Assembly: GCA_964199315.1 (NCBI GenBank)
Contig: OZ116702.1
Span: 33,852,001-33,916,000, forward strand
Reading direction: 5' to 3'
DNA: 64,000 nt
DNA from: Orbicella franksi
Lineage: Eukaryota
Shown one piece after another: positions 39,701-61,974 of this stretch. The notes under the pieces were generated by a model. It had not been told where the DNA came from. It was given only the letters and a program-made list of their open reading frames with translations, and searched no databases. The position numbers were made by a program, and so were the translations under genes. The number at the start of each line of letters is the position of its first letter. Positions within the stretch are counted from its first letter, which is position 1.

Positions 39701-42700
39701 ACATACATAGAAGAGTTTAGAAAGCTAAAACCAAAAAAAAAAGCTTGAAAATCACCGAATGTTTTCGACTGTTGAGTCATCAAGGAGAATATAAAGAAGA
39801 TGAATCAGTAGTCGAAAACGATTGGCGTTTTTTGAAACTTGTTTTAGGTTCAGTCTGTTAAATTGTCAGATAAAAATAGAGAAAGTTGACTAGGATTTTG
39901 AACTGTGAAGGAACGTGAACTTATAAATTAACCCTAATTTACATGTTTCTGTTTACCGTGTGATAACTGATTCTCGTGTCTTGTTTCCTATTGCAGTGTT
40001 GTTCCTGCATTGTATAACGCGCTCGACCAATCACAAGACTGCACTCAGTTTTCTCAGTTCACTCTGACGTCACAAGGAGAAGTCACGTGAGTTTTCACGG
40101 TTTTTTTTATGTGTAAACTACTGTCATCTGTCCTTGCTAGTTAACCACGATTTTTTTTCTTTTCACAGCCCGGACGCGACACCAACCAGTACCCCTGGTG
40201 AGTTCTTTGTCAAGTCACTTCAAAGACAACGTTGATTTTTAAAAGAAGTGTCTTTATTTCATTTCGTAAACACATTCTCACGCGTAGCCTTCTCAGAAAG
40301 CGGAAAATCTAGAAAACTAAGCATAAATTATGCAGCTTATTTTATACAATATATCTTAACATTCCTCTTCATAACCGTTGCCGAGTTTAATAAATCGTTA
40401 TTTCATGTTCGTTAAATGAACGAGAAATTATCTGTTTAGTAACTTGTTTATTTCCTGTTGATATCTGCTCCTTTCAGTGGAACTGGTGTCATTCAAATTA
40501 GTTTTATGTTTGCTTTCTCATTGTTATTTTAGAAGAAGAAAAGGATCTCTCCCTGGTACGAAACAACAATGGCGACGAGTTAACGTTGAAGAACAAGAAA
40601 GAGCTTGAGGCTGACCCAGTTTCGTCAGGTGTAGAGAAGAGTGAAGTTAAAGATAGCAACGAAACAACAAAGAAGACAGTTAAAGAACTTAAAACTGTAG
40701 ACAGTGAAAAGGAAGTTGAGGAGGTGATGGAGTACGGTGCTGGCGAAATATCGCATGACGAAAGTGAAGACGATGCTGAAGAAAAAGTAAACGCTGCTAC
40801 CAATAAAACAGCAGAAACGGTTGAAGATGTAACCACAATTGAGAAAGAAATGCAGTGCGGTGATGACGAATGCGAAGTGACGTCACCTGACGTCATACCT
40901 TCGTCACAGACGCCAAGTTTTGAGTCTCCGTTCCAGTCCCTTAGACGAGTGATGATTCCGCTCGAGGCCATTTTGCCCAGTTCATTGGAAACAATGAGAA
41001 ACAAAGGGAATTCAGAAAGAAAGCAACTTGAAAAAACGGAAGGGATTAAAGAAGATGAAGCAGTGCTGGAAACAAAGATGGATGTATTAGAGACAAATGA
41101 GGTTGACGAATTGTCATCTGTGAAACCAGAGGAACCACCCGCTACTAAAATGAAGGTGTCCCCAATCGCCAGGCGAACAAGGAGAAGATTGCAACGGAAA
41201 ACCAACGTCGAAAAGAACCCTTCCCGCGAGGAACCCGAAGACGAACCCGGAGAACAAGAGGTCAGCGAACTTATGCACAAAGATCCTGAAAAGTCAAATG
41301 AACCAACCGTCACAATGAAACCCGCTGAACTAACTATCGCGGGCGTAACCAGAGATGCAACGTCGTCTCCAGTCCTCAGCGCCAAGAACAAGTTTCTGCG
41401 TCCGTTTGCAGCAGGTGGAAGTCCTTGTCGTGTGACATTACGCGGGAGAAATTCACCATGCGTTTCACCGACAACTGGAATTTTAAAGAAGTGGCCTGGT
41501 AGTAAGCAGGCAATTGACTCGCCCTCTCCTCCTGGAAAGGTATTTTTGCCGTTCTTGATTTAGAAAATCAAAAGTTCATTGCACGATTTGCAAAGAATCA
41601 ATGCATGAGCTCATTAGCGCTTTTGCCACCCAGAAATTTTACAGTTTTTGAAAGCCTTGAATAATATACCCAAAGATCCAAGAATTTCAACTATCACTAA
41701 GTTTCACAAGCTCTTTAAATTCGTACCTAGCATGATTCTTTCTCAGCTGCGCAAAGTGGTGTGTCAACTTAAACCATAACTGAAGCAACGATCGCTCCAT
41801 GTCGTCATCTCTATGGCAGTTGGTTCATGAACATTGGTTTTCTTTTCAGGTGCGGAGAGTGTCGTTTGCTCTTCCTGAAAAAGATGGCAGTTCTGAAGAG
41901 TCACAAGAAAAGTCCTTAGAAACAAATACCACTGCTTTTCAATTGAAGACGTCCAGCTCTTCTCCTTTTACGGCTATTAAGCAGGTATAAAAAATCAAAT
42001 AATTACACTGCTAGGTCTTCTAACCGAGCTAGTGAAAACCAGTCTTAAGCCACGTTAGTTTTAATTCCGGGAGCTGATGGGCGAAATAAAGTCTTTGTGG
42101 TCCGGAGAGTAAGATGTTTGACACTGAAGGAAGTTTGTTTTTCCCTTTACATTTCAGCGGCGACCTGTGCCTGTAAGCAGTGACCTTTGTACTCAAGACC
42201 TGACTGACTGTATGTTCCCGGATCTTGTGTCTTGCACTGCACCAGTTGAACAGATACTTCCTTCCATTCTCACCATGTCCTGGTCACGTGGTATGGGTCA
42301 CTTGGTACGCGCGCAGAATATTCACACCATTGGAAGCTTGTCAGCTCTCAAAGAGGAACAGGTAACTAGGGGCGATGGGATGTTTGGTGACTTTTGTCTA
42401 GGGCCAATTCTTCAATTAAAACAGGTTTTCGTTGAAAATATTGTGTTTATTCATTAAAGCAATTGTTTCCAAACGCAATAACAGATAGACGCTGATATCT
42501 AGTTTATAAAATTCAACAAAAGATCCTTTCATGAGACGGGCTTTAGTCGTTTTAGTTTCAGTAGGAAGGCTCATTGCGTGTCGCGAATATTTAGTCACGA
42601 AATTTCAAATCGCCACAGTATTTTAACCGTTTTGGTAAATATACACCTCATGATACACAAACCTTTCTAGTTGTGAAAATACTAATAATTTGTTTTAAAA

Positions 42701-44047
42701 AAACTGTTGTTTTTTAGGTGAGGAATTTGCCCATTAAATCGCCCAAGGTACCAACTCTGAAGAAGGCCTTAAGAAGATTTCACCAAAGTCAAAGAGGCAG
42801 AAATTCAAAACCACTCGCTGCGAAACTAACGGCGGAAGCTTCGCTGAAAGAGGAGAATAAAAATATAGAAGGTACGGTTGGTCATGTGACCTTTCCAATC
42901 AAAAGAAGAAAGTTAGCACTGAAATGGGTTGCCGGAAATAAAAAGAACGGGACCATTTTAGAAATCAATTTCGCCGTGTGTTCCAAAACTAGTTACAGAA
43001 TGACATCATTTCTCGATAATTTCCGTAACGTTTCTGTAACTGACCGTAAAATTTTGGGTACGCTCTTTCTCGTTTTACTTCAATGTCGCCGAACCTTACT
43101 CCTTTCTCGACCTGAGTGTAATTTGTCCTCCAAAAAAAGGTTTCAAATTTGAGTGTGAATTGCTGACCCGCTTGCTTTCTTTTATCACAGAGATTGATGC
43201 CTCTTCTGAGCGTGCCCAGCTCCCAAGCGAGGCCCACGTGGTGATGGAGCCAATCAGCATGAAGGATTCTGTTGGAGATAACCTGGAAGCGACATCCACG
43301 GGTGAAGAGTGCTTAGAGACAGCCGAGGAGTTGAGGGGTGAAGAAACTGGGTCTACTGACGAGTGCGACTCGAATGAACCCGACATTGAAAGCGTCGTTG
43401 ATGACGAGAAAGTGGGGTGCAACAAGGCCTTAGAGTCAAATGAACCCGAGATTATCACTATCACAGAGGGGGTGAATGTTTCTGGTGACGCCATGTGGGG
43501 CAGTAGTGAGGGAGGATCAGCGGACCATGTGAATGAACGCTCGGGCGATGAGGAGTCAGCCAGTCAAAACCGTACTACGCATGACTCCGACGCTATGGAA
43601 ACATCCGCTGACATCGCCACCCCACAGCGTGAAACTTGCGCCCAGCCGACTAAATTATTCTCATGCGAGAAATCGGTCGAGCAGAGTGCGAGAATTGATG
43701 AAACGTCGACTCACGAAGAGGATTTATCAGGAGAGGTCAATGACAAATCCAAGCAAAACGAACTTACTGAATCAACGAAGGCGGCCCAAGTTACTAGTGA
43801 AGAATCTGCTACGCTCCCCTCGACTGCAGGCACCGAAAGTAATTTAGCTGTCGAAGAAGAAGGCTGCAGGGAAAAGGAGAAATTCTGTGACTGTTTACGT
43901 TCCCTAAAGGATCTTGCGTTACCTGACGTCTTGCGTGATTTGTCCAGTGAGGAGATTTTCGAAGCGCATCACAACCTGACGGAAATTATGTCAGAGGTTG
44001 TCCAAGCTTTGAGGGGCCGCTGGCAATCTCCGAGATCCAAGAAATAA
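24885..44047 (+). CDS. RIF1: Telomere-associated / replication-timing protein RIF1, 39 coding exons, about 1955 aa
   Basis: Phase-consistent exons: 24885-24994, 25423-25498, 26390-26475, 26798-26835, 27932-28035, 28475-28566, 28704-28797, 29187-29285, 29458-29550, 29813-29866, 30421-30505, 30727-30776, 31084-31191, 33050-33380, 33496-33609, 33841-33903, 34009-34103, 34312-34469, 34891-34995, 35122-35197, 35586-35690, 35852-36001, 36175-36405, 37064-37224, 37577-37637, 37718-37813, 37961-38067, 38153-38210, 38407-38439, 38678-38854, 39276-39377, 39528-39607, 39997-40086, 40169-40197, 40533-41539, 41850-41984, 42158-42361, 42718-42871, 43191-44047. Hallmarks: QVDAYL, AWNILIDNFALSP, TNDVNQGDALEHDFS, AEANICCEEL, FWNATF, LTEHQKE, PP1 motifs GILK...VRRVSF, MFPDLVSC, LPIKSPKV and C-terminal RGRWQSP. 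Confidence 0.95.
25819..26042. mobile_element. 224-bp hAT-like MITE in RIF1 intron 2
   Basis: TIR CAGGGCTCGAAAAAA / TTTTTTGAGCTCTG. The flanking 8-mers GATTTGAG and GACTGGAG match at 6 of 8 positions (possible decayed 8-bp TSD). Confidence 0.65.
27684..27714. repeat. (ATT)n microsatellite (another at 61546-61585)
   Basis: Direct reading. Confidence 0.9.
30801..31000. other. Assembly gap (200 N) inside RIF1 intron 12
   Basis: Run of N. The flanking exons join in frame (…LIMTPLR|NLAVKERNES…) and are collinear with vertebrate RIF1, so no coding exon appears to be missing. Confidence 0.95.
31353..32646. mobile_element. About 1.3-kb non-autonomous TIR element in RIF1 intron 13
   Basis: TIR CAAGGCTGCTGCCTAA / TTAGGCAACAGCCTTG. 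Subterminal GG(C/T)(G/T)CCTAA motifs occur at both ends, and TTTTC flanks both sides. No transposase ORF. Confidence 0.7.
38895..39251. mobile_element. hAT-like MITE in RIF1 intron 30
   Basis: TIR CAGGGGTGCCACAG / CTGTGGCAACCATG with repeated internal TCAGGGAAA motifs. No clear TSD. Confidence 0.65.
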
Positions 44048-46344: not shown

Positions 46345-46882
46345 TCCGAGGCGTCAAAACCTGTCAAAAAATTTGACTAGCAATTAGAGAAAATATTCGC
46401 GTCCGTGTTGGGAATGTACAGTTTTGTTCCTTTCGCGTTGAAATTTACCAAGCCAGATAGGTCGAGGTCTGTAAGTGGTTGGCCCTTGATAACAACGAGC
46501 TGGGCTCCCTGAACTCAAGGTTAACAAGATCAAAATAATATGTTGAGGTTTGGCAGCGGATTCAGGGCATTTGTATTTAGGTCATAATGCTTGAAGACGA
46601 TAGAAACGAGCCAGGGAAGGTGAGAACTTGTTTTTAATTCAGCCTTCTAATTTTGATTCCAACTCCAAGGAAATCAGTCACTTAGAATGATGGTATAAGC
46701 TATGTCGCAGACGGTAGTTTCATGGGGTAAAATTAATTAGATTAGATGTTAATCTAATCTTAAATTAAACGGAGGTAAACTTTGCAGTTATGCGACTAAA
46801 ACTAATCCCCAGGTTAAAGTTATTTTATTTTAGTTTGCATTACACTTATCTGACGACCCGCCTGTCAATTTTCTCGTTCAAC
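46345..46882 (+). CDS. Putative 5' exons of the ABCB-like gene (uncertain)
   Basis: Candidate non-coding exon ending at 46195 (GG|GTAAGT). Exon 46345-46470 has an ATG at 46414 (MYSFVPFALKFTKPDRSRS|GTAAGT). Exon 46581-46619 reads VIMLEDDRNEPGK|GTGAGA. Possible exon 46834-46882 reads FALHLSDDPPVNFLVQ, resembling the PPVSF motif before TM1. The junction to 47834/47844 is not resolved. Confidence 0.35.
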
Positions 46883-47843
46883 GTAACGTTTTTTTAAAAA
46901 AAAAAAAAAAACCTTGAACAAGAAAATTGACAGGCGAAGCTTCTAATTATTACGCCAGAAATTGTTTAATCAATAACCGGCTAATTCCACAATTGACATG
47001 TGTTTAGCTTGAAACCTGACCTAGTATCTAAACAATAAACTGTTAGTGAGCTTATCTTAAAAAATTTAACGCGCATTTTTAGTGATAAACTCGTCCGTAA
47101 TCTGTCTCTATAGGTCTCAATCTTAATCACCTTTGTTTCTTTGCTATTTTTCAGCTTACTTAACTGTAATTTAAAGATTACCTTAACTTTTCTCTAATTG
47201 TGTTGCATCGCAAAAGTGTCTTTAAAATATCTCAAGGCATATCTCATCGATTCTCACGTGATAAGGACGGAAGTTCGCGAAAGGACTAAAATTAGTGCCA
47301 GTCTCCGAAATTTACATGAGCGTGCGGTAGTTGCTAGCGTGGTTGCTATGTGCCAGAACCTCAAAAGAGAGTTTAAAAATACGTGTGGCAGTCTCTTGTC
47401 TCTATAATTTATTTAAGAACAACCAATTATCAAATTGCATATTTGAATATAATAACAAACGAAATTAACCAGTTGCAGTTTGTTCCATTGGAAAACAACA
47501 ACATCAACAATTTATTTAAATATAAGTTAAGTGGATGTCGAGCAGATGCCATTATCTTGTATCATTGAGCTTCATTGAGAGAGCGTCCAGAAAGTTTCCT
47601 TTAAATTGCTCATTTCCTCTTGTAAACTGTGTATTTAACTCAGTTTGAAGTTTGCACAGTTTCAGTATTTTTTTGCAGAAAACCAGCAGCAAACACTATT
47701 TCCCTTACTTCATTGATTCCCTCTGACTAGTTTTAAGGGAGACGAGGGTGCATTTTGATTTCAAAGTTCACGATTTAAAAGGAAGGGACTCTAATCGACG
47801 AAATACAGTATTTACCTGTTGGTGTTGATTTAGTTTGTTTCAG

Positions 47844-50800
47844 ATGTGGTCTCTCGTGTTTTAATGATTTGTGGGTCCCTCATGGCAATAGCTAATGGGC
47901 TGATTCCATCTCTGGGAGCCATGATCTACGGCAAGATGACGGATGAGCTTGTTATCCATGAAAACTACAGCTGTACGCTTAACGAGAGTATTACTTCTGT
48001 TAGATTAAGAAACCTGGTGACACTGGAGATGATTCATCCCCGGTTAGAAGGAATAAACGTTACGGAAACAAAATCGCTTGAAGTTACGGTAAACGAAACT
48101 GGAATACAGGTGAAAGTTGTCGGCTTGAACGGTGAGCTGCTAAACCAAACAGTTTTCGAGGGAAGGAACTCAACTCGTTATAATACAACATCAGTGTTTC
48201 TTAACGGGACAACTCTGAACGGAACAGAATTAACTGGAATTGAGGTAAACGGGACTCGTGTTGACACGGTGAAGTCAAAGGAGAGAATTTCTGTAAAGCA
48301 AAAAGATAGCATAGGTCCTGTTCAGAGTATTAAAATGTTACCTGTGACACCAACATCCAAAGTTCTGCCCGAAACAAATAATGTAAATTACACGCTGCGA
48401 AACATCACGGAAAACTGCCGCTTATCTCAAAACAGAATTGAGGAAAAGATGAGCAAATATGCCCTTTATTATGTGTATGCGGCCATTGGAACATTGCTTT
48501 TTGCGCTCGGACAGAATGTGATGTGGAACATTGCTTCAGAGAGGGCAGTTAAAAACTTGAGCGAAAATTTAACAGATGCAATGCTGGACAAAGATCCCGG
48601 ATTTTACGACACCAAGATACATGAGGGTGTGGTTAACTTGGAAAGTATTACGTAAGTATGACAAAAAAATTGTTGGTGAATAGAAACATGTTGCTTTGCT
48701 ACGAACAAATAAAGTAAACATTTCAATAGACAAAACGAAGCAAATAAATAAATAAATAAATAAATAAAAATAGCATTTGTGCATCAATCGGGACAAAAAG
48801 AAAAATAGAACTTCTTGCAGCCCCGTGAGAGATTTGAACTCTCGACCCCTGGTTTACAAGACCAGTGCTCTAACCACTGAGCTAACGAGGCTGGTACACT
48901 GGCCGTTGTCGTTTATTTTTATTGTTTTTAACGTACCTGTTTTTACGCGTCTGTGCAGTATTTTTTAACGCGCAAATATAAGACTCATCACATACTTGAG
49001 TGAGAACATAGGATAAATGTGTAATATGTGATAGTTCCCCTGGAAATGAACCAAAAGTTCAAAGTCTCATCCCAGAGAAGAAAAGTTTTAGGTGTAGTAA
49101 GATGTTATTGTCTCTGTGAGCCATGGTACACATCCAACAAGGTGGACAACTTTTTACGGCTTTTTACGGCTTGCAGTGTGACCTGAAATAAACTACTTCT
49201 ATCATTTTTTCGTACAATGATTTGAGACCCTTAATTTTAATTTTAGTTACACAGATAAAACTGTTAAAAGTTATGTGTAATAGCATGTCAGCCTCGTTAG
49301 CTCAGTGGATAGAGCACTGGTCTTGTAAACCAGGGGTCGAGAGTTCAATTCTCTCACGGGGCTTTTGCATTTTTTTGTAATTGTTTTTCTGCTTGATGCG
49401 AACTCCAATTCTCAGTTATACATCCTTAAATTGTATGTTATACATTTTATAGAGAATTTGTTGGTCCTTTTTTATTATAAATATCTACCTGTCTAATGGT
49501 GTAATGATCACCATTATCTGTTCTACCAAATCAAAACGTCTTTTTTTGTGTGTCAGAGATCCTCGAGAAGCTATCAGCCAACACGACCTCGACGCGCTGA
49601 GCGGGGGCCTGGGCGGAGAGATAGCGTACTTGATACAGAGTGTATCAAATGTGATGTCTGGATTTCTTGTCAGCTTCATTGAAAACTGGAAAATCACGCT
49701 ACTAATGATGGCTGCTGGGCCTGTCCTAGCGGTTGTTCAAGGTATCGCGCACAAGGTAAAGGTACAGCAGTTTTATCGTCTTTTAGAAATTAAGCAGGAT
49801 AAAAAACAACAACAACAACAACAACAACAAAAAACAAAAAAAACAAAAAACAAAAAAACATTGCAATCCCGTGAGAGATTTGAACTCTCGACCCCTGGTT
49901 TACGACCCCTGGTACGATGACATTCTGGTCGTACCTGCACGTGTAAATTAAAATTAATGATATGATGCCTCTGATCACTAAAGCTGTTTAGTGATTCTGC
50001 GCTCTTTCTAGCTTCACTTGCTCTAAAGCGACTGCGGAAAAAGTAAAGGTATACGTTTTTTCATCCATTTTACAGCGTTCAGGTGGTTCTCGCCACTATT
50101 TGTTGTAAACGTCATAGCCTCCAGGGCCGGAATGTTCGAAAGCCGGTTAACGCTAACCTAGGATAAAAAGTTAATCGAAGTATTCATTTTTCTTGTGTAA
50201 AAATGTTTTTCATTGCTTATGTTTTGTGTAGTTTGTGATTTTTCAAACTCAAACCTGAAGGGCAAACAATATAAACAGAAAACAGCACCCAAAAGTTACA
50301 AAACTCAAATAAAAATTTTCTCTAATCTAGGGTTAGCTTAATCGGGCTTTGAACAACCCGGCCAGTTGCTTCCCGCCATTTTTTCTTACCTACGTCATAG
50401 CTTCCAGTTGTTTCCCGGCTTTTTTTCTTGAGTGCGTCATAGTTTCTAGTTTCTCAGCTTTACGTGGTCCATACGTTACGTCTTCGCCACAATTTGCTGC
50501 GTAAGATACACTTTCTAGTTTTTGTTTCTAACTGACTAAGATTAAAATAATTCTGCATTGCCTTATGAGGATATTGATGATAAATCATGTGCGAACTCGC
50601 CTAAATATACCATGATGTGCAAACAAAATTACGAGTGCAACTGAAATTGACAACACTGGGAGCAACATACTCTATGTTACATGTAAACTCCTTCTCTATG
50701 CATATAATTATTTTTTACAGTTTGAACAAACATTTACACAAAAAAATCTCTTGACTTCTCAAATGGTGTATATTCTTCTGTGATTGTTGTCAGGTGCATG

Positions 50801-53800
50801 GCTTGTCAAGCAGCTCCTAAACGTGTACAATATTAACAAACAAACAACAACAAAACTTTATTCCTTTTTCATTAATTTACAGCCATGAATTTTACGTTAA
50901 TGATTTGTCTTACATCTACACTTTGTTGTAATATTCTTGTTAGGTTGAAAAATTTGTTATGAAACAAAAAGAGGAGTTGAAAAAGCGAGCCAGTGCAATG
51001 GCAAAAAAGAGCCTGGGATCGATAAAAACCGTGGCGTCATATGCTGGAGAGAAAATTGAGAAAGCACGGTAAGTCAGAAGTTTTCTTTTCACTTTGCTTA
51101 ATTCGCTTTAATAACAGTAACTTTGATCAGACCTCTTTCATCAACAGATACGCTAGCAAGATAGAGGCGAGCAACAATCTAAACAAACTAAGGAGCCTTG
51201 TTCTTGGCATACAGAGTGGAATCTCTACTGTCGTCACCTTCGGCTTCCTTGGTTTGGGCTTTTGGTGAGTTAACGTACATTTTATCTCCAGTAAAGGTTA
51301 AGGTTTGTTTCAACGCCAGTTTGGACCTTTGCTGTTCTTGATATCCAATCAGAAACTATCACGGGAAGTCGTTCACAACTCCTGAGGACAATCTAGGGGC
51401 ATCTCTGAAAATCTTGCTGAACCACTAAGGAACTTTTAAATTCTTCTCTGTTATCTTTATGATTGCGGTTACTCAGACTACAGAAATTCCTGACGAAAAA
51501 ATTACCCTCAACCAATTCTCTGAGACTTGTTTTCATCTAGACTGGCAGTTCATTATACGAAGTCGCTAATCAGTTCAGAGGTGAAAATAGCATGAAGTAA
51601 ATGAGTAAATGCATGAATGAGTGAAAGAATAAGAGATATATCTGAGAATTGGAGTTCGCATCAAGCACAAAAAAAAGAGAAAATACAAAAATTGCAGCAG
51701 CCCCGTGAGAGATTTGAACTCTCGACCCCTGGTTTACAAGACCAGTGCTCTAACCACTGAGCTAACGAGGCTGCCATGCCACATCAGTTAACTTTTAATA
51801 ATGTTGTTCTGTAACTATGTTTCACAGTTCAATTCTCTAATGTTTATGTGTTAGATACTAACGGAATCTCCGCTAAAATCTCATCTAGGTACAGTTCCAC
51901 TCTATTACCAGGAGGAAATGTGACTCCAGGAGCTTTGATGACGGTCAGTTCCTTTGCATGTTTGTTTTCTCTTTCGTTTGCTACTTTTGTTTTTTCGCTT
52001 ATTCAAGTTTTAATGATGAAGTACACATAGTATACCTCAAGTACTCTTTTTTCGCTGATTATTATACGCCAGACGTTGTTTTATCTCCCTAATTATATTG
52101 CGAAGTCATTTTAAATTCGACGGATTTTTTCCGAAATATTGCGTGGAAACGATGTTTTCGGTTAAGTCTGTGTTCTGGTAAAGTGACGCAACAGGTTGGC
52201 GGTTATTTCCTGTATCTCTACTCCCTCTTGGATGGGTGCTAGTCCATAAGAGGGTTACTTACGTTATACCCTGTATTAAATTCGCCGGTACCCATCTGTA
52301 CACCTGGGTGGAGAGAGGCACTTGTGTGTGAAAATGTCTTGCCCAAGAACAAAACAAAATATCCCCGGCCAGGGCGATGTCTTGAAGTGTTTAATGCGCA
52401 CTGCGGTCCTTATATTTCTGTTGACTTGTCCCTTTTGTTCAATAAAGATATTTATGGCGATCATTTCTGGAGTGATGCAAATGGCAGGAACCGGAGAGCA
52501 AGCGGAAGACGTCGGTGACGCCAGAACAGCGCTTTCATCTCTGCTCGGAGTCTCAGAGTCGGTAAGATCTTTTGTTTTATGGTATATTTTTTGATTCGAA
52601 ATGCTACTCTCCTGAGCGTTGTGCGGCAACCCGAAAACAGCAATGATGGAGCCAAAGATGCAACAGAGGCAACAAAGATATACATTTTTTTTCTCGTAGG
52701 CTGATGAAGACCCATTTGACAAGGCTACCAGTCAACTTGACACAGTGTTTGGTAAACTGGATGTTTTCAATGTTTACTTCCATTATCCCTCCCGACCCGA
52801 ATATCAGGTATGATGTTTAGACGCACAGTGGCACGTTTGGCTGCTTCACTTTACTTCCTATTGTTCAACTAAATGTTAAAGTTCGTCCTAATTTTGGTCT
52901 GTAATGAGGAACTTAAATATTGTAGTTTTTCTAGACAAGAAAACACTCATAAGAATTAAATCAATTTTGTTCTTATTTAGGCGAACTTTGAATAGAGAAT
53001 AATTCAGTCCTCTTTGTCTTTTTAACGAAATCAATACGTTGTATGTTTTCCATCTCACAGGTGTTGAAGTCGATTAACTTCACGGTAGAAGAAGGTCAGA
53101 CGATTGCCTTGTTGGGTGACAAGGGTAGCGGGAAAAGTGCACTTATAAAATTGCTGCAGAGAATTTATGATCCACAGACTGGGAAAGTAAGACTGTAAAA
53201 CTATAATGTATTCTCAACGGCTCTCTGCACGCATTGCATGCCTATGTCACGAGTTCACAAAAAAAGACTAAATTTCTCCTGACTTCAACCTTTCTTCCAT
53301 GCGGTGGCCTGATGCATCATTCCTATTTAATTTTCTCAGGGTATCGTGAATTTCTTTATTTTAAAGCACACGTACTTATGTTTGTCTTTATTTTTGACAC
53401 AAAGGTGAGGCTCGATGGACAAGACTTACGTTTCCTTGACCAGCGCTGGTTTCGTCAACAAACTGGGATAGTACACAAGAAACCCGAGTTCTTCAACACT
53501 TCAATAGCAGATAACATTGCATACGGAAAGGGTGACGCGACTTTTAAGGAAATAGTGCGTGCCGCAAAGGCTGCTGGGGCGCACGAGTTCATCACAGCAT
53601 TTCCAAAAGTAAGTTACAGTAGGAATTTTTGAATATTTTTACAGCAATCAACCAGCAGTGGAAATTCCTTTTTCTACGAGGCCTTACGACCTGCAGGGTA
53701 AATAACTTATATGGGTTGAAACTAAATATCTTGAAGGCTGTCTGTTTCATTGTCATGAAATAACGAAGTCGCAAATTTGAGGTGTAAATCTATAAGTATC

Positions 53801-56800
53801 TCCTACACTTTAGGGATACGCTACCGTGCTTTACGACGACGGATCGCCGCTGACATCCTACCAGAAACATTTGCTAGCGCTGGCGCGGGCAATGATCAGA
53901 AAGCCCCGGATACTGCTGTGGGAGGAAGACCTGTCAATCATGGACAACTCTGCTTTAAATGCTCTTACGAACTACTTAGATCAGGTGCGTGTCAATAAAA
54001 AAAAACGCTTTTATGACGGTGTAACCTTGAGAAGGCGATTTTACCTTTTGCTAAAGGATAATCGTAAGCTAAATACACTGATTAATCAATGCAAAGTTTT
54101 AAACTGCATCTGCTCCGTAACCATATTGTGTTTCAGGCTCGCCGAGGTCGCACCACAGTCATTTCAACTAGTCACGTGTCAGTAGCTCGTATTGCTGACG
54201 TCATTATTGTTCTTCACAATGGTGAAATAATTGAACAGGGGAGTCCTGAGGAACTGATGTTATCAGGAAGGGCATTCAGATACTTAGCTACACTTCAAGT
54301 GAGTTAAACCTGATTTCAAATAAGTAAGACTACGTCTATTCGTTCTTGACCTTGGGTTGGTTTAAATAGCAATAATTTTCGTCACATGATCTGAAACTTA
54401 AAGCAGCGAGCTCACACTTTGCCGATGAAGACTTCGAGAGCAGGCCACGTGCTTCGTTTACTTTGAATTTTAGACCCTGTGGGGAGAATTGTTTCATTTC
54501 AAATGATTTCTGGTTTTCTGCCGCCTTGGCAGGTGCCAACGTCTTCAGCGCTATCTAGTTAATTGTGGGAATTGCGGTGGCCTCTTGGTAAGCGTGCTGG
54601 ACGTCGGACGAGGTGATCCCAGTTTAAGCCCTTGCATGAACAAGGTTTATAAATAGAAAGCGACGAATTAGATGTTGGAGATCACTCTGTGGTGGTCTAG
54701 CATGCCATCCAAGGGGACTGGAAACTGTTAGCTGCTTCATGCTACTGAGACCTGAGATAAGAGCCGACCGGATGAGCCATTAAGTTCAAGAACAGACTTC
54801 ACCTACCTGCCGTTTCCTCACAGAAAGAGTTTATAATCGCTTGTTTTGTTTTTGTTTCAGTATTTTGAGTCTCAGACTGTACACCAAGAGAGGTTAATGA
54901 AAACTGGTGAGATTGACGGCTAGTATTGTACACTATAAATTTCTTAAAACAAAGTACTTTTAAGATCTTTATTGAAATTATTTGCTTTAATTCAGTTTCA
55001 GTCTTATTAGAGCCACCGCCGGTCAAAGACGGCATCGAAGAACTGGAGGCTAGTTTAAATCAGAGTCAGGAACAGACTAAAGAGCAAGTAAAAGGTTTCA
55101 TATCAAAAATCCGTCAGATAATCCAAGACAAGGTGACAAAAGCATTCAGCAATTGCTTGTTACTTGAACTAACACGACCATGAAGCATCATATGCATATA
55201 GTTAAATTTCGAAAAGGGTGGAAGAAATCAATTACATAACGCATAAGACTACTCTTCAGTGAGAGTACGATGGCCTCATGGTTAGTGCGCGCGACTCCGG
55301 CTCGAGTGGACCGGGTTCGGGGACATTGTGTTATGTTCTTGGGCAAGACACTTTACTCTCACAGTGCCTCTCTCCACCCAAGTGTATAAATGGGTACCGG
55401 CGAATTTCACTAACATTCCATACACGGGGGAGTAGAGAAATTCCTAGTCGCTTCACGCCACGGAAACCGGGATATGCTCCGGCCTAATGGGCCACTTGGC
55501 TCGTATGCAGACTTAACTTACAGTGAGAGTGTTGGGTTTGCAAGCTTATCGGTAATTTGACATAATATATACTTACGGATAGTGGGAATACCTTCGGCCG
55601 TATATATTTTTGTGGCGCTTTCCTTAGCCTCAATCAATGCTTTTTCAGGCATGACTAGCGGCAGCTGTCTGAAAACATTTCTCTGATAATCAGATATTCA
55701 TGGAATGGCTAGGAGGGAAATGTAGTTAGCATGAAAATGGTGTTGTGATACAATTTGTCCAGACATAACGTTTTAGTTACTTTTAAAAGTATTTCAAGGG
55801 ATTTTTGAAACATTTAATTGATTTCAGTTGAATGACGGAAAGTCCGCATACAACATGATAAGGATGCAGCTTCAGGACTTACCATTGTTGTTAACAGGAG
55901 CTCTGGGAGCTGCTATCACTGGAATGGTCGCCCCAGGTCTCTCTTTTCTTTTCGGCGAAATACAAAAGGTAACAACATTTATCAATTAAATTACATAAAT
56001 GGGGCTTTTCGCTCCGTGTACAGAAGAGTTTTCATTGCTATAAGAAAAACATACTTCTGTAACGCAAGGACCAGTTCTTGCAAGTGTTTTCGTTAATAAC
56101 TAAGCGGGGAAGGTTGACGAAAATAAATTCATCCTCAGAATAAAACATGACTGTTACTTGGTTGCCATAATTAATAAATATGTCCTGAAGAGTCAACATC
56201 GTATGAGTTCATGATTCACAAGTTATTCCCCGAACATCTTTCTCAGGTTTCAGTCCGCTAGGAAGGTTAATCGTAGAGTTTATTCCTTGCGCAAAACGAC
56301 AGTAAAGTAGGTTTCTTTTCTTCTTCACTACTGCTTCACAAAAGGTAGTAACTATATGGAATGTTTGTCTTCTTAGTTTATGAATGATCCTCTGAGGGTT
56401 GCACGTGAAGGGCCATTCTGGGCAAGCATGTTTGTTGTGTTAGGAGCCGTAGTTGGATTTGGTGGCACCATTGAGGTAAGAATTTATTTCCTCAGTGGAA
56501 TGCCCAGATGCATGCTGCGAGCCATCGTTTGTGTTTGCGACTGTATACTCAGCCGACTTTATGATCTCCATACTTAATGCGATCGATCTTCTAGAAATAT
56601 GGAGTCTATCGCCAGTTCATTTATAGGATATGTCTTGTTTTTGAATGCTATAGGTGATTTAGGCTAAAAAAATAGATGTGGATATTTATTATATTTTAGA
56701 AATTTATGCTCAGTTTCGCCACTGAGAAGTTGAGAACAAGACTGCAAAAAATGGCCTTTGATACATCAATAAACAAGGTTAGTGTCATTTTATTTCAATT

Positions 56801-59800
56801 GTCTTCATGGACAGATCTCATTAAAAGTTTAACTGATAAATTATATTGCGTTCAATCAGAACTCAGTTCCTCAAATTCCAGGGATAGGCGACTCACTTAC
56901 CGTATTCCCTGGAGCCGGAGGACAATTTCCTGGTGTACCTCACTCGATGAGGATGGGACTACCCACTGTTCCTGGTGCACCCACCGCGCAGTTACCATCC
57001 ATAGGTAATGCCCCTTCTCAAATGTTCCCTGCAGGAGTCACAGGGCTACCATCTGAACAAATACCAGCTTCTGGTCTGCACGCAGTTGGAAATTTAACAC
57101 CGCATTTGCCATCTGAAATTCCATCTTCTCCAGGATTTCCTAAAATGGTCTCAACAGGGTTACCAGAAATTGGAGCCATTTCCGCTGCACCTCAAACACC
57201 AGGCTTTCCCTCGGGTAGCTTTTCAGCAGGGATATCTACACCGGGATTAGCGCAACATGGTTTACCATCAAACATGGAAACGGCACAAGGCCTTCCCAGA
57301 ATGCCAACTAGTTTAACTCCATTGAACCTAGCAGGAACAGGGCAGATGTCATTGCCGGGATTTGCTGCCGGTCAAGTCCCATCTAATAGCGGATCTTTAT
57401 CTTTGGGATTACCCTCTAATTCAGAAACTACTCCAGGAATGACAGGGATATCTGTTGCTGGTCTACCTTCGGGTGTACCGTCAGTCCCTGGTCTGCCACA
57501 AATACCCGGTAGCGTTCCCACCGGAATCACCCCATCAGGTTTGAGAGCTGGAATAAGCCTTCCTAGTCTTCCAACACAGTCTAGTCAATCTGGAATAGCA
57601 GTATTTAGATTGAACCCTGGTCAATTACCAACTGGAACTCATGATTCATCATTTGGGGAAAGCGGAGGCAGTATGCCCCAGATTCCCGGACTGGGAACCA
57701 GAGTTCCTCTAGCAGTTCCTGAAATCAATTCTGGTATGTCACCACAGGTTTTAGGAATGCCTACAGATATAACATCAGCTGCGAGAATGGTGCCCCCTTC
57801 CACAGCGATAGATTTTCCTGGTACAGCTGGCCTTGGAATGGGAGGTTATGGGGCGGTGATTCCTGACCCACAAGTAAATTCTGGTACGTTGCCACCAGGG
57901 TCATCAGAGGTTGCAGGAATGCCTACAGATTTAACTCCAGCTGCTGGAATGGTGCCAACTTCCACGTCGATAGGTTTTTCCGGTAGGGCAATGATACCTG
58001 GCTCACAAGTTAATTTTGGTATGGTACCACAAGACGGATTATTTCCCAGCTCCACTGCAATACCGACTGGAGCACAACGCTTGGGTGATACCGTGATTCC
58101 TACCAATCCATATGCAGGATCAGTTGATGAAGTGGGAGTTACAAAGCTGCAGGAAATGGGACTCCCGACAAATATGCCGAACCAGGACCTTTTGGTAAGA
58201 ATAGATCTATGCGAATCGACACTGTAAAGCGATAAACTAAGTGTTGACGAGTTCTGGCTGCAAAAATCCTTGTGAATATAACTAAGGAAAAACCCTCAAT
58301 TATTCTTCTTCTTGCAAGTCACGTTGGATAGCAAGCGATTGTATTGAAGACTCCAACCTCGCTTTAAGATTTGATATCTTTGGTTTGATATGGCTTTTTT
58401 GTCTCAGGACTCTTTTAGGATTCTGAAATTGAACGCATATAGAAACAATTTTATGATTTTGAACTAAGAAGTTTTGCTTTACTTAAGGTTTTACCAGATC
58501 CACAAAAACAGGCGGACCTACTCATGAGCCAAGTTGAAAAGGATGTAGAAGCAGCTTTGCAAAACGTGAGTAGTGTTTATTTCCAGATTCGCTTTGTAGC
58601 TGGCTTATTCGTATATATCATAGCTCTCTCATCCTGTATGGAAATTGAACCTAACTCATTTTAGCATTAGAAGAATTGTTTTTAAGAGATAACTGATGTG
58701 CGCACGTTTTAAACGATTCTACTCCCTCAGTTTGCTTTTTCCTTACCAATCAGTCCATAGGCAAATATCTTGGCACCAGGGTCCAGGAGACCTTTTCGTC
58801 CGTATCCACACTTGGTATGGCTTTATACAATGGGTGGAAGATGACACTTGTCGTGTTAGCTGGACTTCCAGTCATTGGGCTGGCTAATCGTATTCAGCAG
58901 AATGAAGCCGATGCTACTGTTGAATCAGAAGGAGTTGAAGAAGTGAGTGTTTAATACATGTAACATGTAACAGTGTAGCCATCGCTAACGCGTCACACGA
59001 CGCTTTTTCGAATTAGTAGAGAGAATCGTCATTACAACAAATCGGTTCTGCCGTTTTGAAATTGTAATTTAATATTAATACAATTCTTTTCTGTTCATGC
59101 TAAGACACTTACCCTGTTCTAATTACACATTAAATTTTTGAGAGGCAAAAAGGTTAAGATAAGAGGTGATGTCCAAGAAAAAAATTATTCGGCTATTAAT
59201 AGATCGGCCAGCTTAAAAGCAATCATATTTTGGCTCTTTTTAGAAACAGCAGTTCTGTTAATGACCTTTACTACATTAATTATAGCTTCTCAAAACAAGC
59301 TTCAAGAAAATGGAAACAATTTCAGCCCTTGGAATGGAAAACAAGTTCGTCAAGAAGTATAAGGATGCTATCTTCGAAAAATACAAGTAAGAATTTATAT
59401 TTGTTTTATAATTAATTTCTACGTTAAATCTGGGAAAGCAACCACGTTTTTAGCAGATCTTATACTTAATGTATTATACATTTGTTATGCTCTTTTTTAC
59501 AGGCATGCGTTGAAGAAAGTCATCGCCAGTGGTTTTGCCTTCGCTGTTGGACAAGCTATGGTGTTTTTCATTTACGCAGGCGCACTGAGGTTCGGTTGCT
59601 ACCTTATCAGCATAGGAGATATGGCAGCTATTGAAGTCTTGGGGTAGGCAGCAGATTTCGTTTCCACTGTAGTTTGCCATTATGCATCCATTGCAGGAAA
59701 AAGAATCCTTCTTTGAAATTGAAATACAGTCGTACTTCCTATAATTAATGGTCCTAGTCAGGAAACCAATTGTGAAAAGAGAAGCTTTGTTGCAGACGGA

Positions 59801-61545
59801 CGCAAAGTGGACCAGGGTATCTAGCATTCAGCAACATTGAAGCCGGCCCATACCCAGTCGGTCGTATTAACGGAATATATTTGAATTATTACAGTAACCT
59901 AATCTTTCTTTAAAATGATGTCATTATGATTGATCCCAATCGATTCAAAACACAACTGACACACGATGTCCGCTGTCCCAACTGGTGATCGTTAGTTGTA
60001 TATTATGGGGTATTTTGGACGTAGTCGTGTTAACCGAGGTTTTCAGAAAATTGACTAAGCCGTCTTCGGGTCAAAAAAGAAATAACCGTAACGCAAGGTT
60101 CTCCGATTTACAAAGAAATAATTTAGTAGGCTTACAGCATAATTTATTTTCTTGTTTCAGTGTGTTAATGACAGTGTTGTTCGGTTCTTATGCTACGGCC
60201 AACTCGCGAGCACCGCCGCACGCGCATGAAGACACCGAAGAATCGCTGAACAGATTGTTCGAGTACGAGGCAGCAAACGTGGAAGATCACATAGGTGATA
60301 AGATGGTGAGCGACAATCTCCTCCTGGCTCTGTTCCACCAGCAGTAAAAGAAAAATTAATTACATTTAGAATTATTTTATGGCAACGTACACGATTAAAC
60401 GGAGCTCAGGGTCATCTCGAACTTGTTTTGAAGCCCTCATTGCACACAGTGGTAAACGTAAAATGGACGTGGAAACAAATAACAACTTAGTGACCCAGAT
60501 TCCTGCAAAAGTAGTTAGTTTTGTTGGATAACATTGCCATGTATCTCTCTCGGTCGATTTTCCTGCAGCCGGGCAATAAGAAAATTCCTAATATGAATAC
60601 GTCTCTAAATATTTGAAGTCACCATGTTGTAATTTATTTCTCAAAGGACGAAGTCGAAGGAAGCTTGGAATTTAAACATGTGGAACTGCCAGACCCTCTA
60701 CACAATGGCGCTCCATTGTTGAGCCAGTTAAACGTGAAGGTCAGCAGTGGACAAACATTAGCCATTGTACCGCTGGACAACGAAAAAATCAATCCATTTG
60801 AACTTTTGTTGGAACGTTTCTTTGATCCTTTCAAGGGTGCATTGGTAAGTAATGTAATTTCATTTTGCTTCAGGTTTTGAAAAAATAAAACCTGTTTATG
60901 AAACGCTAAAATTTGAACGCATATAACTTTGCATCACATTTCAGTTCTTGGATGGTGTGGACATACGCAGTTTGGAACTTTCTTGGTTGCGATCCCGGCA
61001 TGCAGTGGTGTCCCATCGCTCGTTTCTTCCACATTGTAGTATTGCCGAGAACATCGCTTATGGTGACAACAGCAGAGAAATAACGAGGCGCGAGATTGAA
61101 GACGCCGCGTACTCAGCTTATGCACATGAATTTATAACGGATCTAACAAAGGTGAGAAACTGGACCTTTGCTGCGGTCATAAAGGCTCTGCTACAATCTT
61201 AGGCAGTTTGCTGAAGCATTCAGGAATATTATTCCAGGGATATTTATGCTTTTGAATGTTTGTTTCAGGGCTATGACACAGTCCCCAATGAAGATCAAAT
61301 CCAGTTGACCGACAGTCAGAAACTCAGGATCGCTACAGCACGGGCTATTATCCGTGGACCAGCAATCGTTGTGATTGACGAGTTGGAACAGGAAGATCAG
61401 GTGAGTCTGTCAGTCAGTCGGTCAGCCGGATGGTCAGTCAATCATGTCGGTCAGTGAGTCAGTGAGTCAGTTGGTCCGACAATCAGTCAGACGGAAATTC
61501 ATAGATGTAGTGATCCATGCTATGCAGTGATTCATATAAATGAAC

Positions 61546-61587
<42 letters not shown>

Positions 61588-61974
61588 ATGTTGACCTTAA
61601 GATTCGTGCCGCCATTGATTGATTACGCTACTTTTACACAATTTAATACGATAGCAAGTTCTGTTGTATGACAGACTCTAGATGTTGCCGGCTAATATTG
61701 ACGGGGTAACTCAACATTAAAAATATGGACGTACACTATTTTATGAAATTAACTGTTTTTTTGTCCGCAGGCTGTAAATGACGCCATACACATCCTTTCT
61801 CGGAACAGAACTTGTCTTATACTCACTCGACGGCGACAAACAGTTGAAGCAGCTGACCAGATAGTTCTCATGTATCGCGGACGTGTTATTGAACAGGGAA
61901 CTCTTGATGAACTTCTGGAACAAGGACGCCTGTATCACTTGTTAACGAATTTAGAAGACGTGGAGGACCTTTAG
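47844..61974 (+). CDS. Highly divergent full-length ABCB (P-glycoprotein/MDR-like) protein with two degenerate NBDs and two large insertions, at least 26 exons, about 1800 aa
   Basis: Phase-consistent GT-AG exons: 47844(or 47834)-48651, 49557-49755, 50944-51068, 51148-51264, 51889-51943, 52448-52561, 52700-52807, 53061-53186, 53405-53608, 53814-53984, 54137-54298, 54861-54906, 55011(or 55002)-55132, 55828-55968, 56377-56475, 56700-56777, 56860-58194, 58488-58565, 58754-58942, 59286-59386, 59503-59643, 60161-60305, 60647-60844, 60945-61151, 61269-61400, 61771-61974 (TAG). TMD1-NBD1-TMD2-NBD2 landmarks: AIANGLIP…YGKMTD, ENWKITLLM, SIKTVASYAGE, FHYPSRPE, SIADNIAYG, GWKMTLVVL, GALRFGCYLI, LLERFFDP, SIAENIAYGDNSR. 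No stops or frameshifts. Confidence 0.88.
48819..48891 (-). tRNA. trnT-TGT: tRNA-Thr(UGU)
   Basis: The reverse complement is GCCTCGTTAGCTCAGTGGTTAGAGCACTGGTCTTGTAAACCAGGGGTCGAGAGTTCAAATCTCTCACGGGGCT: a full cloverleaf with anticodon TGT, A and B boxes, and a downstream T-run terminator. Confidence 0.95.
49291..49363 (+). tRNA. trnT-TGT: tRNA-Thr(UGU)
   Basis: GCCTCGTTAGCTCAGTGGATAGAGCACTGGTCTTGTAAACCAGGGGTCGAGAGTTCAATTCTCTCACGGGGCT followed by T-runs. It differs from the other two copies at two loop positions. Confidence 0.93.
49868..49903 (-). pseudogene. Truncated tRNA-Thr(UGU) 3' half
   Basis: CCCGTGAGAGATTTGAACTCTCGACCCCTGGTTTAC is followed by a duplicated GACCCCTGGT instead of the 5' half. 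Confidence 0.85.
50125..50362. mobile_element. MITE (PIF/Harbinger-like) inserted in a 42-bp tandem repeat
   Basis: TIRs GGCCGGAATGTTCGAAAGCCGGTTAACGCTAACC / GGTTAGCTTAATCGGGCTTTGAACAACCCGGC, with (C)AG on both flanks. Confidence 0.8.
51699..51771 (-). tRNA. trnT-TGT: tRNA-Thr(UGU)
   Basis: Identical to the 48819-48891 copy, with a downstream T-run terminator. Confidence 0.95.
52203..52373 (-). mobile_element. tRNA-derived SINE fragment
   Basis: The reverse complement contains GTTCTTGGGCAAGACA…GTGCCTCTCTCCACCCAGGTGTACAGATGGGTACCGGCGAATTT, the same family as 55267-55520. Confidence 0.75.
54566..54808 (+). mobile_element. Diverged tRNA-derived SINE
   Basis: 5' head GCGGTGGCCTCTTGGTAAGCGTGCTGGAC. 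The 3' tail GCTTCATGCTACTGAGACCTGAGATAAG…CAGACTTCACCTACCT matches the family tail. Confidence 0.65.
55267..55520 (+). mobile_element. tRNA-derived SINE with a CORE-like central motif and a 10-bp TSD
   Basis: Head TGGCCTCATGGTTAGTGCGCGCGACTCCGG…GGGTTCG. Central TTCTTGGGCAAGACACTTTACTCTC resembles the MIR/CORE motif. Tail CAGACTTAACTTA. The direct repeat CAGTGAGAGT occurs at 55257-55266 and 55521-55530. Confidence 0.85.

Follow-up and report, generated by a model that had tools for sequence, protein, structure and literature searches.

A full-length ABCB gene in a coral genome

We analyzed a 64,000-nucleotide stretch of the genome of the coral Orbicella franksi (NCBI GenBank assembly GCA_964199315.1, contig OZ116702.1, positions 33,852,001 to 33,916,000 of the forward strand), hereafter the window, to which all coordinates below refer, and found an ABCB-like (P-glycoprotein-type) gene on its + strand at 46587-61974. 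The gene is real, spliced, and evolutionarily constrained, and codes for a full-length ABCB protein of 1810 amino acids. Its model was built from the open segments of the three + frames, GT/AG splice-site scoring, and comparison with orthologous loci, and comprises 27 coding exons separated by introns that are all of the GT-AG type, with a coding sequence of 5433 nt (1810 codons) that is phase-consistent and stop-free up to the single terminal stop at 61972-61974. According to exon order and translation, the single chain is arranged as transmembrane domain 1 (TMD1), nucleotide-binding domain 1 (NBD1), linker, TMD2, and NBD2, comprising two type-IV exporter TMDs and two NBDs, and exon pieces matched Pfam ABC_membrane and ABC_tran. 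No ABC paralogue was found elsewhere in the window.

An earlier sequence-only reading of this DNA had counted at least 26 phase-consistent exons without a stop, and our independent rebuild recovered 26 of the 27 exons within 47834-61974, the 27th being a tentative first exon of 11 codons. The gene start given by that reading, 47844, needs to be moved: the acceptor of the exon encoding the first transmembrane helix (TM1) lies most likely at 47833/47834 (TAG|TTT, phase 0), from where it joins a small upstream exon in frame. This small exon (46587..46619, + strand; MLEDDRNEPGK) ends at the donor AAG|GTGAGA in phase 0, and its ATG, its length, and its donor were all kept in two related species (L001 and L006), while a pattern search for it in three distant loci (L007, L008, and L010) yielded no counterpart. 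We treat this exon, and hence the start codon, as tentative and without RNA support.

RNA evidence was taken from four polyA runs chosen because they held the largest exon of the gene, a 445-codon exon at 56860..58194 (the large exon, described below). Their contigs were sparse and lay almost all on exons, including six pieces from the 4 runs on the large exon (57230-58219). Two splice joints, 59643>60161 and 60305>60647, were present in polyA contigs from two organisms with different labels, each coinciding precisely with GT..AG borders of the model: the TM11 exon (59503..59643) was joined to the exon for TM12 and the link to NBD2 (60161..60305) in a contig of X10, and the joints on both sides of the latter exon were found in contigs of X10 and X25. 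These two joints supply the spliced transcript that the sequence-only reading had named as a check on its proposal. Two other polyA contigs entered introns. The first, of 151 nt (58069-58219), extends 25 nt beyond the donor of the large exon (58194), and the second (61687-61799) starts within the last intron and continues into the last exon; retained introns, pre-mRNA, or carried-over DNA could account for both. Metatranscriptome contigs (X1, X3) were discounted as evidence for transcription, given that they covered introns like exons, as DNA would, and held no joints.

For the comparison with orthologous loci, the surrounding 20 kb was taken for four relatives carrying the large exon and for two further relatives, and only exons within these stretches were compared. 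All exons within the stretches of L002-L005, L009, and L010 were present, in the same order, and open. Protein identity was 80-100% on the TMD and NBD exons, including comparisons in which the large exon reached only ~30%. Pairwise ratios of nonsynonymous to synonymous substitution rates (dN/dS; Nei-Gojobori, dS range 0.17-0.81) were 0.09-0.14 for the TMD exons, 0.08-0.125 for NBD1, and 0.12-0.19 for NBD2, rising to 0.19-0.60 for the linker, 0.36-0.56 for extracellular loop 1 (ECL1), and 0.40-0.78 for the large exon. Purifying selection is strong on the TMDs and on both NBDs. That the gene is maintained, as had been proposed from its open frame, is borne out by at least six other coral assemblies in which every exon seen was open, by core dN/dS values of 0.08-0.19, and by spliced polyA RNA. 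The two signs of a young pseudogene that had been put forward, a dN/dS near 1 and disabling mutations in relatives, were both missing, with a core dN/dS of about 0.1 and no disabled exon among those seen in six loci.

Ancestry, ATP sites, and two appendages

When three NBD exons were compared with all solved structures (PDB, phmmer), the top matches were all full-length ABCB proteins, namely ABCB1/ABCB4 on two exons and Caenorhabditis elegans pgp-1 on the remaining one. ABCB11 followed closely, and plant ABCB, Ste6, ABCB10, and MsbA ranked lower. The exon holding the NBD2 Q-loop scored 54 bits on the second NBD of P-glycoprotein versus 31 bits on the first, and its borders are common to canonical ABCB exon fragments in the protein database, which read VSQEP. 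From the best structure matches, the NBD2-specific score, and the common exon borders, we infer that the gene is a descendant of a P-glycoprotein-type full-length transporter, with its closest relatives being of the ABCB1/4/5/11 type and not ABCC, ABCA, or ABCG. Within ABCB, the family is apparently a distinct, coral-specific subgroup: identity on the NBD2 Q-loop exon was at least 60% for family members and at most 53% for canonical ABCB exons, in agreement with the lineage-specific subfamily that had been suspected from this one gene. A search of 1.84 billion representatives with the exon for TM1, ECL1, and TM2 returned open reading frame (ORF) fragments only and no annotated full-length protein, and literature searches on such an ABCB-derived protein found no description. 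One published gene, Acropora digitifera LOC107340542, annotated as 'phosphatidylcholine translocator ABCB4-like', carries 20 fixed non-synonymous differences between two sister Acropora species (PMC6505131); it is a candidate member of this family with fast-evolving loops.

Motif positions were fixed by alignment to solved ABCB proteins (ABCB1, ABCB4, and pgp-1). NBD1 opens with an exon (52700..52807; 91-100% identity in orthologues) that carries the A-loop FHYPSRPEYQ with its Tyr present, as in every orthologue. The next exon (53061..53186; Pfam ABC_tran, E 2e-11) contains an intact Walker A motif, GDKGSGKS, at 53115..53138; the pattern GxxGxGKS was found in seven of seven species, with the variants GNTGSGKS, GDKGCGKS, and GEGGCGKS. 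In the Q-loop exon (53405..53608), the position of the Gln is taken by His at 53474-53476 (IVHKKPEFF), and this His is present in every orthologue. The exon at 53814..53984, aligned to LSGGQ and ILLLDE of pgp-1, has the signature LTSYQ (53850-53864), the Walker B motif ILLWEE (53910-53927), in which Asp is replaced by Glu and the catalytic Glu is retained, and the D-loop SIMD. The H-loop exon (54137..54298), placed by orthologue comparison, keeps its His at 54173-54175 (STSH), which is Arg in the distant L010.

NBD2 departs further. Its first exon (60647..60844) has PLDNEKINP at the Walker A position (60770-60796), where ABCB4 has GSSGCGKST, so that the P-loop is erased, and Leu in place of the A-loop Tyr. 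The Q-loop exon (60945..61151) has His at the Gln position (61014-61016, VVSHRSF), a substitution shared by 10 of 11 orthologues; in the orthologue P0096, the counterpart of this exon has Gln (VVSQRCFLP), which could be a reversion or the ancestral state in one lineage. From comparison with orthologues, the exon at 61269..61400 was assigned the signature LTDSQ (61305-61319) and the Walker B motif IVVIDE (61365-61382), and the last exon (61771..61974, ending with the stop) has Arg at the H-loop position (61828-61830, LTRRRQ). Of the motifs by which an ABCB protein is recognized in both of its NBDs, Walker A (GxxGxGKS/T) was present in NBD1 and absent from NBD2, and the LSGGQ signature and Q-loop Gln were present in neither. 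The sequence-only reading had described the catalytic motifs as lost in both NBDs. This description stands for NBD2, where P-loop, A-loop Tyr, and H-loop His are gone, and for both Q-loops and both signatures; it does not hold for NBD1, which retains Walker A, the A-loop Tyr, the Glu at the catalytic position, and the H-loop His.

The substituted motifs of both NBDs are themselves conserved among orthologues. The segment that replaces the NBD2 P-loop, LAIVPLDNEKxNPFELLLERF, was nearly invariant in 14 orthologous clusters, both signatures were degenerate in every orthologue, and both Q-loop Gln positions were His in nearly all orthologues seen. In L010, the most distant locus with NBD1 data, Walker A was intact, while the H-loop His was replaced by Arg and the catalytic Glu by Asp (ILLWED), and the signature read LSPYQ, a pattern that fits conservation of nucleotide binding without conservation of catalysis. 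Judged by these motifs, NBD2 is a pseudo-NBD, and site 2, formed by the NBD2 Walker A and the NBD1 signature, is predicted to be unable to bind nucleotide because the P-loop is erased. Site 1, formed by the NBD1 Walker A and the NBD2 signature, probably binds nucleotide without being consensus. At the level of motifs, this pattern shows an ATP machinery that has been remodelled, not simply lost.

Two long appendages accompany these changes. The exon at 47834..48651 encodes TM1, ECL1, and TM2, matches Pfam ABC_membrane, and has ORF homologues in many coral contigs. ECL1 measures about 175 aa from TM1 to TM2, and its core between two conserved Cys (47963..48418) is 152 aa long and holds 12 N-glycosylation sequons (N-x-S/T), a number reached in 0 of 10,000 shuffles of the loop's own residues (3.5 ± 1.6 expected); the remaining 1658 residues of the protein hold 8. 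Across species, ECL1 ranged from 150 to 560 aa; in eight orthologues it measured 200-560 aa with 6-26 sequons, some of these loops being Thr-rich and mucin-like, and exactly two Cys were found in the same two places in every orthologue. All length differences between species were in frame. Within this exon, the TM parts had a dN/dS of 0.02-0.15 and the loop one of 0.36-0.56. The first ~100 residues of the loop were alignable and had predicted strands; the AlphaFold2 (AF2) model was poor, with a predicted local distance difference test score (pLDDT) of 44, too low for a fold search.

The second appendage is the large exon, which encodes exactly 445 residues, rich in Pro, Gly, Ser, and Thr (15% Gly, 15% Pro, 12% Ser); charged residues are scarce, and GLP/PG motifs recur. 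It is in phase 0 at both ends and lies between KMAFDTSINK, in the cytoplasmic extension of TM8, and ADLLMSQVEKD, just before the coupling helix of intracellular loop 3 (ICL3). Relative to ABCB1, we take it, as a lead, to replace roughly a dozen residues in the region of the WFDD coupling helix. The AF2 model (pLDDT 35) showed no structure apart from a C-terminal helix, and the exon is predicted to be disordered. Conservation is highest in its last ~25 residues (...LQEMGLPxNxPNxDLL), which alone are predicted to be helical and probably supply the ICL3 coupling helix. A search with the large exon returned 18 related open frames (protein clusters) at 31-75% identity, several of them on contigs of 0.2-1 Mb; lengths across species ranged from about 110 to 456 aa, indels between species were all in frame, and every copy ended ...DLL|GT. 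The counterpart in L010 has ~110 codons, is rich in Pro, Gly, Ser, and Ala, and ends PAPDILL|GT at the same place, which indicates that the insert is old and was enlarged in the window's lineage. Both appendages had been noted from the sequence alone, as a heavily glycosylatable loop of about 170 aa and as a 445-aa low-complexity exon in the coupling-helix region, and our measurements of each agree; their co-occurrence with the altered ATP motifs, likewise remarked on then, extends across the orthologues, where all three departures from the ABCB plan are conserved.

Possible function and alternative explanations

We consider it fairly probable that the protein is a non-pumping, ATP-binding membrane module derived from a P-glycoprotein ancestor. 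The sequence-only reading had conjectured that it may no longer pump and could be a receptor, an adhesion protein, or a scaffold, and these ideas stay conjectural here. From the established roles of the motifs, at most one ATP would be bound, at the P-loop of NBD1. With the P-loop missing from site 2, and with signatures and Q-loops that deviate from the consensus at both sites, the protein would be unable to form the two-ATP sandwich on which P-glycoprotein depends, and a normal ATP-hydrolysis transport cycle would not be expected. A nucleotide-binding and essentially non-hydrolysing module seems most likely, with the TMD/NBD core acting as a structural or ligand-binding unit, the glycosylated ECL1 facing outside, and the ICL3 loop possibly serving as a cytosolic docking or regulatory region, placed where coupling between TMDs and NBDs could be modulated. 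A specific role for the membrane core follows from the strong conservation of the TMDs. ECL1 and the ICL3 insert, which evolve fast yet are open in every case, resemble interaction surfaces, the former outside and the latter inside the cell.

The protein resembles ABCB1/ABCB4 in the order of its single chain, in its best structure matches, in its NBD2-specific match, and in its exon borders. The first extracellular loop of P-glycoprotein is the glycosylated one (N91/N94/N99 in ABCB1), and the sequon-rich loop of the coral protein is the first extracellular loop too. The coral protein differs from ABCB1/ABCB4 in lacking the NBD2 P-loop, in the replacement of both signatures and both Q-loops, in the expanded ECL1 (150-560 aa, with 6-26 sequons), in having 110-456 aa of disordered sequence inserted at the ICL3 coupling helix, and, under the tentative model of its start, in a very short N-terminus before TM1. 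The ABC exporter fold is put to non-pump use in CFTR (ABCC7), which is a channel, and in SUR1/2 (ABCC8/9), which are channel regulators. Like the coral protein, CFTR carries a long disordered insert, which in CFTR is regulatory; however, its R domain lies between NBD1 and TMD2, whereas the coral insert lies inside ICL3 and the NBD1-TMD2 linker measures only about 60 aa, an arrangement that sets the coral protein apart from CFTR. CFTR and SUR also belong to the ABCC subfamily and, in contrast to this ABCB protein, retain a P-loop in each NBD and one working ATP site. To our knowledge, ABC exporters have been turned to non-pump roles in the ABCC branch alone (CFTR and SUR), in every case with both P-loops retained. 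ABCA proteins share with the coral protein a large N-glycosylated ectodomain after the first TM helix, closed by disulfides, but they are of another fold class and subfamily, and their ectodomains are folded and conserved, unlike the hypervariable ECL1 with its low-confidence model. Exporters with one degenerate site (TAP1/TAP2, ABCB11, ABCC proteins, TM287/288) likewise have asymmetric sites and family-conserved non-consensus residues. Their degenerate site has a P-loop and binds ATP while the second site is fully consensus and catalytic (PMC7544095); in the coral protein, by contrast, one site is predicted to be unable to bind nucleotide and the other is non-consensus as well, which places it outside this class.

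Several observations weigh against a non-pumping module, and some of them favor an active exporter or flippase in which site 1 binds and slowly hydrolyses ATP, NBD2 is a structural partner, and the loops tune trafficking or regulation. In the window's lineage, NBD1 keeps its P-loop, its A-loop Tyr, the Glu after Walker B, and its H-loop His, so that slow single-site hydrolysis and some transport are possible; a TMD dN/dS of about 0.1 is what would be expected of a working, substrate-handling domain; and ABC exporters are known to function with one degenerate site, ABCB1 being reported to retain transport with an ABCB11-like degenerate site (PMC7544095). However, the known one-site exporters retain a P-loop and ATP binding at the degenerate site and a fully consensus second site, whereas site 2 has no P-loop here. 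Site 1 lacks the Q-loop Gln, and the opposing LTDSQ places an acidic residue where a Gly contacts the gamma-phosphate, while in L010 the NBD1 H-loop His and catalytic Glu are also replaced. We regard continued export as unlikely, though far from negligible.

Other observations bear on the gene model itself, in which the exon with the start codon is tentative. No polyA record spans either border of the 445-codon exon, one contig reaching 25 nt past the donor, and this would be expected if the exon were not constitutive, being either a cassette that the main isoform lacks or an independent unit within an intron. Phase 0 at both borders would make skipping frame-neutral, and a dN/dS of 0.4-0.8 also fits such a status. 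On the other hand, all orthologues are open from a conserved CAG acceptor to ...DLL|GT without a conserved start codon of their own, a shorter version stands at the same place in L010, and polyA RNA from 4 runs falls on the exon. Its last ~25 residues match the coupling-helix stretch of ABCB1, which no other exon supplies, and skipping would presumably delete that helix. A non-constitutive large exon therefore appears improbable. Expression is also very low, given that two polyA raw-read runs (X22, X24) were almost without reads on 53000-58999 except at the repeat at 55200-55600; together with the lost catalytic motifs, this is what a decaying or recently inactivated P-glycoprotein copy, with its open frame a leftover, would show. 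Such a copy would not be expected to be complete and open in the window, with every exon seen in six assemblies open at dS values up to 0.8 and a core dN/dS of about 0.1, nor to have degenerate motifs that are themselves conserved, fast-evolving parts whose indels are all in frame, and spliced polyA RNA. The divergence of the orthologous loci excludes their being copies from a single individual or species, and we judge decay to be an extremely remote prospect.

Returning to the non-pumping module, a more specific role can be proposed, although with more doubt than confidence. The gene could encode a stony-coral pseudo-transporter derived from P-glycoprotein, the first ABCB known with a P-loop-less pseudo-NBD and with both ATP sites non-canonical. 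It might act at the cell surface, binding ATP without pumping, as a receptor, as a gated pore, or as part of adhesion or of the glycocalyx; its hypervariable glycosylated ectodomain and its hypervariable, disordered cytosolic hub would be its working ends, possibly at a coral-specific interface with symbionts, microbes, or the skeleton. Whatever its role, a P-glycoprotein descendant with an erased P-loop and no consensus ATP site, yet under strong purifying selection, is a natural experiment on the uses of an exporter fold that lacks its ATP cycle, and, with two fast-evolving appendages that suggest interaction surfaces, the family could point to a coral-specific cell-surface function. Automatic annotation likely mislabels its members as 'multidrug resistance' or 'ABCB1-like' in coral genomes, which would mislead studies relying on such genes as xenobiotic-stress markers.

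Remaining exons and surrounding sequence

The other exons of TMD1 follow the ECL1 exon in the order of the transmembrane helices. ICL1 and TM3 are encoded at 49557..49755 (Pfam ABC_membrane positions 107-162; 79-95% identity in L001-L005), TM4 and ICL2 at 50944..51068 (85-100% identity in orthologues), and TM5 at 51148..51264 (placed by splice-site scoring and orthologue comparison). TM6 begins at 51889..51943, an exon on which conservation ends at ...GALMT in all orthologues, and continues, with the link to NBD1, at 52448..52561, where the block IFMAIISGVMQMAGTGEQ... is kept in all loci. An earlier solution for TM6, consisting of 51889-52006 and a 19-codon exon at 52525-52581, also spliced in frame; it was replaced by 52448-52561, given that the conserved frame of the orthologues differs from it.

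The linker between NBD1 and TMD2 is encoded by two exons, 54861..54906 (YFESQTVHQERLMKT, ending in phase 1 and conserved in L004, L005, and L009) and 55002..55132, for which an alternative acceptor at 54996 is likewise in frame. TMD2 starts with the exons for TM7 (55828..55968; 89-94% identity in orthologues), TM8 (56377..56475; 94-100%), and the cytoplasmic extension of TM8 (56700..56777; donor phase 0), which precede the large exon. It resumes with the part of ICL3 after the coupling helix (58512..58565; 89-100% identity in orthologues), and then with TM9 (58754..58942) and with TM10 and ICL4 (59286..59386), both placed by splice-site scoring and orthologue comparison.

Several introns of the gene contain repeated elements. 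Sequences resembling tRNA-Thr(UGU) were detected by ARAGORN at 48817-48892 (-), 49290-49364 (+), and 51697-51772 (-), with a partial copy near 49838-49910, and the element was also present in introns of L004, an orthologous locus; these sequences look like a tRNA-derived short interspersed nuclear element (SINE) family rather than working tRNA genes. The repeat at 55200-55600, with a related copy near 52182-52330, had a very high depth in RNA libraries: word depth rose to about 1e5 in the metatranscriptome contigs, and polyA raw reads gave about 85x. Both strands were represented, with many loose ends, which points to a highly transcribed dispersed repeat. In the intron after the exon 61269-61400, a GTCAGTCAG-type microsatellite (SVSQSVSQ in one frame) was found at 61400-61500 of the window and at 16700-17400 of the distant orthologue L005.

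Farther upstream, positions 30801-31000 of the window consist of 200 N, an assembly gap or masked stretch. The upstream neighbor of the ABCB-like gene is represented by two long open exons (40502-41560 and 43040-44044, +) whose product is acidic and rich in Ser and Glu. In the distant L008, the C-terminal block of this protein (...SSEEIFEAHHNLTEIMSEVVQALRGRWQSPR) is conserved and stands at the equivalent place upstream of the ABCB-like gene, and the gene order is therefore old.

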